In this document: positions 32,401 to 41,400 of the stretch, piece after piece
Position numbering within the stretch: the first letter of the stretch is position 1
How the letters are laid out: each line of letters begins with the position of its first letter
Assembly: GCA_002269645.1 (NCBI GenBank)
Contig: NIVC01000902.1
Coordinates: forward strand, 1 to 64,000
Length of the DNA stretch: 64,000 bases
Reading direction: 5' to 3'
From: Macrostomum lignano
Taxonomy: Eukaryota
Translations under genes and position numbers: made by a program
The notes under the pieces: generated by a model
Database searches by the model: none
Seen by the model: the letters and a program-made list of their open reading frames with translations, nothing else
Told to the model about the DNA's origin: nothing

Positions 32401-35400
32401 GTCAACTACAGCTCGCTAATCTGCGGAATTCCGGTGGAGAAGCTCGGCATTCGCAAATTTGACAGCTCAGTTAACTGCCTCGAGGTTTTTACTCATTTAA
32501 GCAGTGGAGACAAATATACTGAATATCAAACGTCAAATTGCGATGAATACTCTCGGTATTTTTCGACTGTAAATTCAGTGTCCGGTGTAAATCAATATGC
32601 CTATCGATTGCAAGACTGCAAAAAGCAGCTAGCCGGAGTATTCTGCGAGAAGCCAATTAATAAAGGTAATTACAGACAGCGGTAATTACAGACAGCGGTA
32701 ATTACGTACAGCGGTTTCAGAAGAGATGTTTATTCGCCGATGCCTCTTATAAATTGCAGTTCTGCACGGCTGCTACAGGCTGCACTGGTCGCTCATTCCT
32801 GACATGCAACAGCCGGAACTCGACCCCCAGCTGCACCTGCGTCAGTGCTTGGCTACCTGTAGCTGGAAAACCGCGCAGCTGGCGGCCTTGAGTCCCTACC
32901 GGTGCTACTGCATCGATTTCTCTGAGCTAATGAACCCCGCCATCGCCGTGCCGCTTCCCAGCAAGACTTGTTCGCGCACATGCAGCGGCAATCGGTACCA
33001 GACCTGCGGCGGCAGCTCGAGTTTAGTTGACAGGGACATTGTGTCCGTCTATCGAGTGGGTGAGCTGATCTCCGAGTCGTTGCGAATCCTGCTCGTCCTG
33101 CAATTTTAGCATTTTGTTGTAATTTTTTTACCCTCTGCCTACGGCAAGTTATTGATAGCATGGGCCTGTGAGGCCGTCTCCCGAGGCCTTAAAACTTCAG
33201 CTCAAATTTTTCGAGTTGAAGGCGAGGGTTTTTTTCTTAGATGTATTTTAAATGTATGTTGCACTGTTACAGGGTGTTCGACCTTAGATGTATTTCAAAT
33301 GTATGTTACACTGTTACAGGGTGTTCGACCTTAGATGGATTTCAAATGTATGTTACACTGTTACAGGATGTTAGACCTTAGATGTATTTCAAATGTATGT
33401 TACACTGTTACAGGGTGTTCGACCTTAGATGGATTTCAAATGTATGTTACACTGTTACAGGATGTTAGACCTTAGATGTATTTCAAATGTATGTTACACT
33501 GTTACAGGGTGTTCGACCTTAGATGTATTTCAAATGTATGTTACACTGTTACAGGGTGTTCGACCTTAGATGGATTTCAAATGTATGTTACACTGTTACA
33601 GGGTGTCCGACCTTAGATGTATTTCAAATGTATGTTACACTGTTACAGGGTGTTCGACCTTAGATGGATTTCAAATGTATGTTACACTGTTACAGGATGT
33701 TAGACCTTAGATGTATTTCAAATGTTACACGTTTATGAAATTCTGCCCTGCATAAATGGGATTAATTAGCTCACCAATTCTATTAATTCACCCGCTGGCT
33801 CTTCCAGACCCGGCTTATCAAGACATTTCCGCCAGCTCATGCATGGAGATTTTCCTCAAGGGTTTCTACCTGTCCGGATACTATCTGATCAACGGCCAAC
33901 ATCAGTATTGCTACCTGGCGGGTGAGTGAGAAGGGACTATTAGATTTTGCGATTGTAATACCGTAATACCTGCTTTGATAACTTCGGTATTTCCGATTAA
34001 AAGTTCAGACTCGGGATTTCATAAACAATTGATGAATCCGCTATATAACTTTTCTTCGATCAAGGAGCTGTCACTTCCTGCTGTGCAGGGCAGCCAGAAT
34101 TGATAAACTGCTCGCCTTCTTTAGGAGCTGTCAAAAGCTTTCTTGGCGCTTGTTCCTTGCTTTTTGCCCCTTGTGCAATCCGCGGTTTCCTTCTTGCTTC
34201 TTGTATTTTTGTATTCCGGTGTCCGGGCATCTGCAGTGCGGACCACCGAGTGCGCATTTGCAACTGGTGCCTCGCTAGCGGCGTCACCCACACTGCGGAT
34301 GCACTGGGCTCTCCTCTTCTAAGCTGGACTGGCCATTTTCCAGACTGCCTTAGAATTTTACTCAGATACCTCTAATCTGCTGAGAGTTAGTGGTCATTCC
34401 GAGCTAAGGGTTAGCACCAAACAGCTAACCCTTGGAGACGTCTGATCTCTGTGGAAGATTGTAGTTGGTTCACTTGTGTTGGAACCCTCTCGGTTCGGCT
34501 TGGATGTGGAAGATTGTAGTTGGTTCACTTGTGTTGGAACCCTCTTGGTTCGGCTTGGATGTCTTTTATGTCAGACTTTTGCGTTTGACATGGCATGGCA
34601 TGATTTAGACTAGGGTTTTCTAGTCTACTGCAGGTGTACCTGATTGAGTTTTGGTTACTGTCTTGGGGGATTGGCTGGTTGCGGGTGACGGATGATGATT
34701 CATGCTGCTTTCTAAAACCATTGGTCAGCTGACTTTCTGGTTAATGCATTGCAACTAACATGCGAGTCATCTTATTTTTAGATTCTAAGATTCTTAGATT
34801 CTTATTTTTAGATTTTACATCTAAGAGGAGGCTCTGCTCCAGGCGGAGGTCAGCCAGCTCCAGCAACAGCCGGCCACCTCAGATCTCCCTGGTGAGTTCT
34901 TCGATGCCTTTATGTCGGAGGAGGCGCATACGAGGAAGCAGGAGATAGGGCTTAGAAAAGGCAGTCCCTACCGCATCCCTGAGTTTATCAGTAAGCGTAA
35001 GCAGCAGGACGCTGGTGTCACGCAGTCCGTGGACAGGTCGGGGAAGGTGGTCTTCAAGGTGAAGGAGGCTGCAGTGGAGACGTTGACGATGGGAGACTGG
35101 ATAGCTGGCAATGCGCGCATCATGTTGAGAATGCTAGATGATGGCAGACTGGTGAAGCGAGGGGATGGTGGCTGCCCGGATGTGTCGGAGCTTCGCGACT
35201 ACCTGCGCTACACTGTCCGCATCGGTGAGCTGTTCGACCTCGGGTTCGAGAAGGCGCGGGTGCTGAGATTTGACGATGAGTGCCGGCTTGGCGACTCGCC
35301 TGGTGCTACTTGGGAGGCGCGTGGTTCAGACATCGGCCTGGTGGCCACATATTTGATGGCGCCACAGAAGGGCGAGGTCGCTGCGGAGAGACCGGGTAGG

Positions 35401-38400: not shown

Positions 38401-41400
38401 GAGGCGTGCCTTTGAGCAGACCAGCTTTAGTACCCCCGGGGGGTTGGTTTTGGGCCTTTGTGCGTGCGTGGGGTTGGCGTGGGGGGGGGGTTGTGCGTTG
38501 TGTGTCTCTACCCTCCTTTGTGCAGCGGCCCTCCCCCCTCCGCCTGCTGAGGGTTTTTAATGCCCCGTTTTCTCTGGAGCTCCTGCGTTCTCGCTCTCGC
38601 TAAATTTTTTTATTCTTCTTCTTTTAAAAATTTTCTTCGGTTTTTATTCGGCATTACAAGCATTACAAATATACAAGCATTCGAGTCTTGTTGGAGGCTG
38701 TGGCTTCGCCTCCGTGTTCTCGCCAACCTCGGTGTTCCTCTGTTTCTCTGGGTTCCTTCCGGGCCGGGTACTAACGGTATTTTTCGACTGTAAATTCAGT
38801 GTCCGGTGTAAATCAATATGCCTATCGATTGCAAGACTGCAAAAAGCAGCTAGCCGGAGTATTCTGCGAGAAGCCAATTAATAAAGGTAATTACAGACAG
38901 CGGTAATTACAGACAGCGGTAATTACGTACAGCGGTTTCAGAAGAGATGTTTATTCGCCGATGCCTCTTATAAATTGCAGTTCTGCACGGCTGCTACAGG
39001 CTGCACTGGTCGCTCATTCCTGACATGCAACAGCCGGAACTCGACCCCCAGCTGCACCTGCGTCAGTGCTTGGCTACCTGTAGCTGGAAAACCGCGCAGC
39101 TGGCGGCCTTGAGTCCCTACCGGTGCTACTGCATCGATTTCTCTGAGCTAATGAACCCCGCCATCGCCGTGCCGCTTCCCAGCAAGACTTGTTCGCGCAC
39201 ATGCAGCGGCAATCGGTACCAGACCTGCGGCGGCAGCTCGAGTTTAGTTGACAGGGACATTGTGTCCGTCTATCGAGTGGGTGAGCTGATCTCCGAGTCG
39301 TTGCGAATCCTGCTCGTCCTGCAATTTTAGCATTTTGTTGTAATTTTTTTACCCTCTGCCTACGGCAAGTTATTGATAGCATGGGCCTGTGAGGCCGTCT
39401 CCCGAGGCCTTAAAACTTCAGCTCAAATTTTTCGAGTTGAAGGCGAGGGTTTTTTTCTTAGATGTATTTTAAATGTATGTTGCACTGTTACAGGGTGTTC
39501 GACCTTAGATGTATTTCAAATGTATGTTACACTGTTACAGGGTGTTCGACCTTAGATGGATTTCAAATGTATGTTACACTGTTACAGGATGTTAGACCTT
39601 AGATGTATTTCAAATGTATGTTACACTGTTACAGGGTGTTCGACCTTAGATGGATTTCAAATGTATGTTACACTGTTACAGGATGTTAGACCTTAGATGT
39701 ATTTCAAATGTATGTTACACTGTTACAGGGTGTTCGACCTTAGATGTATTTCAAATGTATGTTACACTGTTACAGGGTGTTCGACCTTAGATGGATTTCA
39801 AATGTATGTTACACTGTTACAGGGTGTCCGACCTTAGATGTATTTCAAATGTATGTTACACTGTTACAGGGTGTTCGACCTTAGATGGATTTCAAATGTA
39901 TGTTACACTGTTACAGGATGTTAGACCTTAGATGTATTTCAAATGTTACACGTTTATGAAATTCTGCCCTGCATAAATGGGATTAATTAGCTCACCAATT
40001 CTATTAATTCACCCGCTGGCTCTTCCAGACCCGGCTTATCAAGACATTTCCGCCAGCTCATGCATGGAGATTTTCCTCAAGGGTTTCTACCTGTCCGGAT
40101 ACTATCTGATCAACGGCCAACATCAGTATTGCTACCTGGCGGGTGAGTGAGAAGGGACTATTAGATTTTGCGATTGTAATACCGTAATACCTGCTTTGAT
40201 AACTTCGGTATTTCCGATTAAAAGTTCAGACTCGGGATTTCATAAACAATTGATGAATCCGCTATATAACTTTTCTTCGATCAAGGAGCTGTCACTTCCT
40301 GCTGTGCAGGGCAGCCAGAATTGATAAACTGCTCGCCTTCTTTAGGAGCTGTCAAAAGCTTTCTTGGCGCTTGTTCCTTGCTTTTTGCCCCTTGTGCAAT
40401 CCGCGGTTTCCTTCTTGCTTCTTGTATTTTTGTATTCCGGTGTCCGGGCATCTGCAGTGCGGACCACCGAGTGCGCATTTGCAACTGGTGCCTCGCTAGC
40501 GGCGTCACCCACACTGCGGATGCACTGGGCTCTCCTCTTCTAAGCTGGACTGGCCATTTTCCAGACTGCCTTAGAATTTTACTCAGATACCTCTAATCTG
40601 CTGAGAGTTAGTGGTCATTCCGAGCTAAGGGTTAGCACCAAACAGCTAACCCTTGGAGACGTCTGATCTCTGTGGAAGATTGTAGTTGGTTCACTTGTGT
40701 TGGAACCCTCTCGGTTCGGCTTGGATGTGGAAGATTGTAGTTGGTTCACTTGTGTTGGAACCCTCTTGGTTCGGCTTGGATGTCTTTTATGTCAGACTTT
40801 TGCGTTTGACATGGCATGGCATGATTTAGACTAGGGTTTTCTAGTCTACTGCAGGTGTACCTGATTGAGTTTTGGTTACTGTCTTGGGGGATTGGCTGGT
40901 TGCGGGTGACGGATGATGATTCATGCTGCTTTCTAAAACCATTGGTCAGCTGACTTTCTGGTTAATGCATTGCAACTAACATGCGAGTCATCTTATTTTT
41001 AGATTCTTTTTATTTTCAAGCGCATGCTCACCGAAAAAGAGTAGTATTTACCATACATGTAGGTTATATTTTTCATTATTTACAATACTCCGCACTCTAC
41101 ACAATAAGCTGTTGACTACGTGCTTTTTTGCTCATTTAGTCGTAAATCTGTCAAAAGAAACTTAAATTTACGCTCATACTTTACCAACGAAGTTCTTGAT
41201 GGCTTCTCTCGTTTAATTAGCCTGAGAAAGCGGCTCAGTTGAGAAGTTTATGAGACACTTGAAGCAAATTTTTGAGACACCGGAGTCGTTTATAAATAAA
41301 AAAATGCTTCAAGATAGATGCAAAAAGTCGGCTCAAGATGGTTTAGCGTCTAAATTTTGTGCGACAAGCGTCTCTACTCGTGATGTCTGTATCTGGCGGT

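Follow-up and report, generated by a model that had tools for sequence, protein, structure and literature searches.

Ngaro retrotransposons, said to have been described by Goodwin and Poulter in 2004, are tyrosine-recombinase retroelements, and the absence of a methyltransferase separates them from the DIRS and PAT elements. In the published description of Ngaro, no methyltransferase is present, the split direct repeats are arranged as A1...B1-A2-B2, and the internal repeats are located downstream of the recombinase (PMC4157794). The related element DIRS-1 produces linear single-stranded cDNAs of variable length (PMC7192593). For LINE-1, target-site duplications longer than 1 kb have been described in which a long distance separates the two host ends (PMC5223499), and tandem duplications are formed when the cDNA bridges to a sister-chromatid break downstream of the initial site (PMC7058536, Fig. 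7b); these direct duplications, with 5' truncation and an intact 3' end of the element, range from over 1 kb to megabases (PMC5223499; PMC7058536). Here we describe a locus in a 64,000-nt stretch of Macrostomum lignano DNA (contig NIVC01000902.1 of assembly GCA_002269645.1, positions 1 to 64,000, forward strand; hereafter the window). A 5'-truncated Ngaro-like tyrosine-recombinase retroelement of about 3.95 kb (34823-38774, + strand), delimited by its open reading frames (ORFs), its repeats, and its relatives, is flanked there by two identical copies of a 2,233-nt segment of a mosaic extracellular-protein gene. This single gene occupies roughly 11.8-56 kb of the + strand and is composed of Sushi, WSC, and C-type lectin modules. 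With about as much confidence as doubt, we read the locus as a genuine tandem duplication of 2,233 bp that is very recent and arose, in a single event, together with the insertion of the 5'-truncated Ngaro-type element at its junction.

Self-comparison of the window at an offset of 6221 showed that 32554-34786 is identical to 38775-41007 over 2,233 nt with 0 mismatches, while immediately outside this run the identity fell to the chance level on either flank. An initial annotation of this DNA had described the two copies as a composite unit X-A, and its coordinates, sizes, and identity were correct at 2,233 of 2,233 positions. Copy 1 (32554-34786, + strand), supported by the exact identity to 38775-41007, the splice sites, the WSC match, and the tandem repeats, contains the last 112 nt of exon 20 (to 32665), intron 20, exon 21, intron 21, exon 22, and 865 nt of intron 22. 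Copy 2 (38775-41007, + strand), supported by the same identity and by the reading of its exons, begins with a 112-nt fragment of exon 20 (38775-38886), in which the donor is present and the acceptor is absent, and continues with exon 21', exon 22', and the native intron 22; unlike in copy 1, the intron sequence at its end runs on into unrelated native intron. The spacer between the copies (34787-38774, 3,988 nt) consists of a short AT-rich tract followed by the element. The layout observed is W - X' - (filler - 5'-truncated element - exact 3' terminus) - X' - Y, with X' standing for the 2,233-nt segment and W and Y for the left and right flanks, and it has the geometry of a 5'-truncated retroelement insertion in which 2.2 kb of target sequence were duplicated.

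Three tandem arrays were found inside both copies with equal copy numbers (16 nt x3.2, 47 nt x10.4, and 55 nt x2.1), and the 47-nt minisatellite of copy 1 spans 33236-33725 (490 bp) in intron 21. The perfect identity of the copies, these three arrays included, indicates a very recent event, and the three open ORFs of the element, together with the complete identity of its repeats B1 and B2 (84/84), indicate that the insert is young. The duplication may be polymorphic. Identity of 100%, with a 490-bp minisatellite among the matched sequence, is also the usual look of a false duplication, in which each haplotype would carry a single 2,233-bp copy and the tandem layout would have been made by the assembler or by a chimeric molecule. 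Against such an artefact, the longest exact word common to the 2,233-nt segment and the 3,988-nt insert was 15 nt, located inside the AT-rich junction tract, and blastn and Smith-Waterman comparisons of the host segment with the insert gave chance-level scores beyond this 15-mer, so that no repeat longer than 15 nt was available for path switching. The region has no gap, and the whole window contains no N base. The novel junctions are specific, one of them lying at the exact terminus of the element and the other being a tract built from the adjacent intron, and a simple heterozygous insertion could not explain why the right flank begins 2,233 bp upstream of the point where the left flank ends. 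Since there is no shared repeat, the four junctions (W>X', X'>insert, insert>X', and X'>Y) must have been present in real molecules, which places X' twice on one molecule. An artefact is unlikely on these grounds, less likely than the initial annotation had feared.

The element carries three ORFs on the + strand. The first is an ORF1 (gag-like) remnant (34825-35556), 57% identical to the ORF1 of the relative L001 and ending in a C-terminal CCCH-like finger; its frame opens at 34825, directly after a TAA stop, and its first ATG is at 34912 (ORF 34912-35556). The second is an intact ORF of 552 aa (35602-37260) for the reverse transcriptase (RT) and RNase H, with a Pfam match to RVT_1 (1.9e-13) above the cut-off and a match to RT_RNaseH (0.0041) below it; the best database relative of this ORF was 59% identical (P0001). 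The third is an intact tyrosine recombinase ORF of 352 aa (37137-38195), for which the Phage_integrase match of Pfam (0.0019) was below the gathering score. It was 52% identical to the recombinase of L001 by tblastn, and its translation showed the HSLRRGGA motif, H-x-x-R, and the terminal Y. The start of the recombinase ORF at 37137 overlaps the end of the RT ORF at 37260 on the same strand, an overlap that leaves no room for a methyltransferase; the element ORFs had no other Pfam matches, and no endonuclease domain was found in them with Pfam. Directly downstream of the recombinase ORF lies the split direct repeat B1 (38301-38384, + strand), followed by the A2 region of 306 nt (38385-38690, + strand), whose Smith-Waterman scores against the window were at the level of shuffled sequence, and by B2 (38691-38774, + strand), which forms the canonical 3' terminus and ends at the junction with copy 2. 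Judged by this domain content and by the B1-A2-B2 repeats, the element is of the Ngaro kind, and the initial annotation had been right to call it so. Three features of Ngaro elements were not found in the window copy, namely the A1 repeat, a complete ORF1, and insertion without a target-site duplication; we read their absence as the outcome of truncation and aberrant insertion and not as non-membership.

The 5' end of the element was defined by comparing its ORF1 with those of the four nearest relatives, L001 (381-1535), L002 (763-1812), L003 (3-1109), and L004 (40-1059), which are 32-57% identical to it. In 4 of 4 relatives, 125-160 more N-terminal residues extend beyond the homology of the window copy, which consist of a SAP-like motif (matched by Pfam SAP in L004), a linker, and then a coiled coil whose consensus is EAExxxRLLxLxxEEAxLQAE. 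The window copy enters the alignment without transition at EEALLQAEV (34825), midway through the coiled coil. In the nucleotide sequence, the homology to the relatives begins at AAGAGGAGG, about 34823; upstream of this point the relatives have GC-rich coding sequence, whereas the window has the AT-rich tract. The copy at this locus is accordingly best described as a dead element that, by comparison with these relatives, would have lost A1, the leader, and about 125-160 N-terminal codons, which is about a third of ORF1. Searches of the whole window by blastn (word sizes 11 and 7), by Smith-Waterman alignment against shuffled controls, and by tblastn found no A1 (a copy of 38385-38690).

The relatives also gave a view of the clade as a whole. 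Besides a conserved coiled coil, its ORF1 has a SAP-like DNA-binding motif at the N-terminus and, at the C-terminus, a CCCH-like finger (C-x8-C-x4/5-C-x3-H), which differs from the CCHC knuckle usual in gag proteins. The nearest relatives, L001 to L004, were drawn from two sources, a JGI metagenome and the sequencing run SRR31628392. In L002 (1-4327, JGI 3300040801), the end of the recombinase is followed by 385 nt and then by ORF1, an order that corresponds to the collapsed or circular-permuted path expected from split-direct-repeat elements in short-read assemblies. A more distant but complete relative, L005 (54-kb contig, 36% RT identity), showed the canonical layout, with A1 at 3701-3924, then ORF1 (377 aa), RT, and recombinase, B1 at 8541-8709, A2 at 8706-8929, and B2 at 9261-9429; its B2 stands at the end, and no duplication flanks it. 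A kb-scale flanking duplication had been noted as unusual for such elements when the locus was first annotated, and the absence of any such duplication in L005 agrees with that remark.

The status of the last 865 nt of the repeated segment (33922-34786, termed A) is critical for the origin of the duplication. The first annotation had divided the repeat into host DNA (X) and an element-derived A, but no boundary between the two is marked in the sequence, and no link between A and the element was seen. With blastn and Smith-Waterman, A had no similarity to the element or to A2, and only chance-level matches were obtained with the missing N-terminus of ORF1 (SAP motif and coiled coil). Comparison of A with the 5' region and leader of L001 gave scores at the level of shuffles, at a divergence too high to be informative. 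No second copy of the element or of A was found in the window by blastn, Smith-Waterman with shuffles, or tblastn. As nothing ties A to the element, we read all 2,233 nt as host DNA; on this evidence they behave as such, and both new junctions appear to be non-homologous.

These comparisons bear directly on the cause proposed first. In that proposal, A was a truncated fragment of the element family lying in intron 22, and the 5' part of a copy inserted in exon 20 had undergone unequal homologous recombination with it or been mis-joined to it. Such an exchange formally yields the order W-X-A-body-X-A-Y, and the relatives do carry several hundred bases upstream of ORF1. It needs an A that is homologous to the 5' part of the element, and none was found: A resembles neither the element, its repeat A2, the leaders of the relatives, nor the missing ORF1 N-terminus. 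In addition, the coding homology stops in the middle of ORF1 right after the boundary of the duplication, so the sequence upstream of 34823 is not the native 5' continuation of the element. The look-alike that had been raised with it, a haplotype mis-join through the same repeat, fails for want of any shared repeat longer than 15 nt; without such a repeat, neither homologous recombination nor a mis-join can have passed through it. We consider this explanation, in either form, extremely improbable.

The two ends of the insert differ in character. At the 5' side, the AT-rich junction tract, or filler, of 36 nt (34787-34822, + strand) lies between the end of copy 1 and the first homology to the element and reads AAGATTCT TAGATTCT TATTTTTAGATT TTACATCT. 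Of its 36 nt, 35 were covered by 5-mers from the preceding 25 nt, an exact 15-mer is repeated (34800-34814 = 34770-34784), and nearly all of the tract is made of pieces of the 19 nt immediately upstream (CATCTTATTTTTAGATTCT). This structure is compatible with a non-homologous templated junction, produced by polymerase-theta-type end-joining or by serial slippage, and is no proof of it. The tract was also considered as a statistically exceptional templated insertion, a reading that was rejected: the density of minisatellites in the window makes about 9-19% of random positions locally repetitive, and these positions scored as high as the tract itself.

At the 3' side, B2 ends exactly at 38774/38775. 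B1 is followed by TGCC and B2 by CGGT, the start of copy 2, and the junction sequence ...GGGTACTAA/CGGTATTT contains no A-run. By chance, a break would coincide with the end of B2 only about once in thousands of cases, which argues that the 3' junction was made at the true terminus of the element. The host sequence left of the insertion point (GAATACTCT/, 32548-32551) and the end of B2 (GGGTACTAA/, 38769-38772) share TACT, 2 nt from the junction; this overlap may be a short recombinase core, or chance. In L005, the end of B (TTAA) and the bases before A1 (TTAC) overlap by 3 nt.

An exact element terminus at one side and a broken end at the other could also have arisen in two steps, if a full-length element had inserted canonically, through its recombinase, at 32553/32554 in exon 20 of one homologue and a later non-homologous exchange had joined intron 22 (34786) of the empty homologue to the break in ORF1. 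The canonical junction between B2 and the host would then call for no unusual chemistry, the non-homologous, filler-bearing 5' junction would be accounted for, and exon 20 would be kept intact in the product. The cost of this sequence of events is a rare non-homologous exchange between the homologues of a heterozygous individual; between sister chromatids, such an exchange would have left the full element in exon 20, where instead W>X' is uninterrupted. It also demands two rare events in place of one, and the zero divergence of the copies leaves little time between them. We therefore consider a two-step origin quite unlikely, and two simpler orders were rejected outright. A tandem duplication that came first, with the element inserting later exactly at its junction, and an element that came first, with the breakpoints of the duplication later matching its terminus, both need a coincidence at the level of a single base.

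The favoured reading, a duplication and an insertion formed in one event, would proceed as follows. The 3' terminus of the element (the end of B2) would be joined to the host at 32553/32554 in exon 20 by the element's own end-defining chemistry, either as a first recombinase strand exchange at the B/A junction of a circle or, alternatively, from a linear incomplete cDNA beginning at the B2 terminus. The incomplete 5' end, broken inside ORF1, would be joined with filler, by non-homologous and probably templated end-joining, to 34786 in intron 22. This second host end, 2.2 kb downstream, would lie on the sister chromatid or at a staggered break, and fill-in or segregation would leave the 2.2 kb on both sides of the insert as a kb-scale target-site duplication. 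The second host end (34786) is located downstream of the first (32553/32554), as it is in LINE-1 bridging. We infer from the layout that one event made both junctions; the captured molecule would have been a circle or a linear cDNA, and the assembly is taken to be correct.

Several points weigh against this reading. Tyrosine-recombinase elements have no endonuclease, and the 3' junction has no poly(A), so literal LINE-like target priming would be unexpected. No established route leads to an exact B2 end on a linear cDNA. Assembly duplication would likewise show perfect identity over 2.2 kb, minisatellite included, and the reading of the tract as templated filler is statistically weak, because 9-19% of random positions are equally repetitive. 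The truncation is deduced from relatives that are 32-57% identical in ORF1 and are not copies of the same family. Finally, no member of the same element family was found in public protein collections, in which the best RT match was 59%.

A further route would account for the order of the parts from a nick. The 3'-OH of the template strand at 34786/34787 would be extended by reverse transcription on a nascent, unspliced host transcript as far as 32554, jump to the 3' end of a Ngaro RNA, copy it into ORF1, and be re-joined with filler. Nick-primed synthesis of this kind would give the observed order and orientation, the retained introns, the sense-oriented element, its intact 3' end, and its truncated 5' end. 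It is entirely inferential, and it requires both that the polymerase switch templates from within the host RNA and that the element RNA end exactly at the B2 end, which the accepted DIRS/Ngaro model does not predict (PMC7192593; PMC4157794). We hold it to be very unlikely.

The consequence for the host gene was examined by reading the splice sites directly from the sequence. Exon 20, which encodes a C-type lectin domain, ends at 32665 in phase 1 (AAAG/GTAATT). Exon 21 (32760-33059, + strand) has 300 nt and encodes a WSC domain in full (33.7 bits, the cut-off being 27.8), and exon 22 (33808-33921, + strand) has 114 nt and encodes 38 aa with two cysteines and no Pfam match. Their copies are exon 21' (38981-39280, + strand) and exon 22' (40029-40142, + strand). 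Exon 23 starts at 41824 (+ strand), where the next C-type lectin domain begins, and accepts phase 1; from there, the first stop in its frame comes at about 42034, and 42000 serves only as a nominal end of the exon. Exons 21 and 22 are each of phase 1-1, and the conceptual transcript 20-21-22-21'-22' contains no stop. The exon coordinates and phases of the initial annotation, and its claim that a splice from 33921 to 38981 keeps the frame, agree with this reading.

Exon 20 stays intact in the duplicated gene, and the new intron (33922-38980, 5,059 nt) holds the sense-oriented element and the acceptor-less fragment of exon 20. Inclusion of both copies, a possible outcome of this exon arrangement, would add 138 aa (the WSC domain and the 38 aa) in frame, while skipping of copy 1 or copy 2, equally possible, would restore the ancestral protein. 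Sense-strand signals in the element, or the orphan donor at 38886, could disturb the transcript. The donor of exon 20 sits in the 16-nt x3.2 array (GGTAATTACAGACAGC), at 32665-32715 and 38886-38936 of the window, and the donor motif G/GTAATTACAG is present three times with a spacing of 16 nt; use of the second or third would shift the frame.

The other WSC modules of the gene were 26-36% identical to exon 21, and the earlier WSC expansions are therefore old. No further copy of the 38-aa module of exon 22 was found in the window. A recurrent unit of WSC plus the 38 aa was rejected on these two results, the low identity of the WSC modules elsewhere and the lack of a second 38-aa module in the window. 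By eye, and as a tentative lead, the 38-aa module resembles the first strand-loop of fibrinogen-related or fibrillar-collagen C-terminal domains. In a protein search, the best match of the lectin exon was a Macrostomum lignano lectin with 43% identity.

Around the locus, the introns contain long, near-perfect minisatellite arrays at exceptional density, at 12179-13116, 15674-16619, 18186-21800, 42862-43700, and 44315-44950, with more at 48081-49588, 50072-51997, 52697-53341, 60230-60707, and 61272-62151. Some of them are strongly strand-skewed, the GC skew reaching 0.65 at 18-22 kb. The mosaic gene is preceded by two other genes, with exons of a leucine-rich-repeat protein at 60-1068 and an exon of an SLC35A2-like UDP-sugar transporter at 5592-6068, the best database match of the latter being 53%. 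The GC content of this upstream region is 56-58%, against about 45% further on. No Rfam match was found in the window.

The unusual aspect of the locus is an in-frame exon duplication of zero divergence with a tyrosine-recombinase retroelement at its junction, in a single case. To our knowledge, no kb-scale target duplication by tyrosine-recombinase elements has been reported, and a literature search, which was not an exhaustive review, surfaced none. If real, the locus is a snapshot, at zero divergence, of a mosaic extracellular protein gaining a domain unit with the causal junction legible. It would also mean that a class believed to integrate only as circles, and without target duplication, can make LINE-like truncated insertions with kb-scale duplications. 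We tentatively propose, with more doubt than belief, the general form of this idea: tyrosine-recombinase elements could enter chromosomes one-ended, with the true 3' terminus joined by their own machinery and the other end joined by host end-joining at a distant break, which would give LINE-1-like kb-scale duplications and, at this locus, would have duplicated an in-frame WSC exon pair in a single step. A real event would bear on the integration of these poorly understood elements and on the frequency with which transposon-bridged duplications seed exon and domain expansion. For annotation, the locus serves as a warning that identical sequence flanking a transposon should not be assumed to be derived from the transposon.

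Compared with Ngaro elements, the window copy has the same ORF1, RT/RNase H, and recombinase on one strand, the same lack of a methyltransferase, and the same B1-A2-B2 repeats downstream of the recombinase, and its closest proteins come from complete elements of Ngaro layout (L005). It differs in lacking A1, the leader, and the first third of ORF1, and in being flanked by a 2,233-bp direct target duplication, whereas Ngaro is described as inserting without target-site duplication.

With the long target-site duplications and L1-bridged tandem duplications of LINE-1, the locus shares the 5' truncation, the intact 3' end, the direct orientation, and the long direct target duplication (PMC5223499; PMC7058536, Fig. 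7). The position of the second host end downstream of the first and the irregular 5' junction are common to both as well. Unlike LINE-1, the element of the window lacks both an endonuclease domain and a poly(A) tail and is not located at a TTTT/A-like target, and its class is thought to integrate as a circle by site-specific recombination.

A second parallel is provided by yeast, in which cDNA of the Ty1 retrotransposon was reportedly captured at chromosomal double-strand breaks, in work of Moore and Haber and of Teng et al. in 1996. In both cases, an incomplete retroelement copy is joined non-homologously between two host ends. Here, however, the host ends are 2.2 kb apart and in the "wrong" order, hence the duplication, and one end of the element is its exact canonical terminus.

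With respect to the gene, the rules of exon shuffling formulated by Patthy hold that mosaic extracellular proteins gain domains when symmetrical phase 1-1 exons are duplicated in tandem. Exons 21 (WSC) and 22, in a mosaic gene of Sushi, WSC, and C-type lectin modules, correspond to this pattern. The locus differs from the known cases in that expression of the longer form is only predicted, the copies have not diverged at all, and the junction that caused the duplication can still be read.

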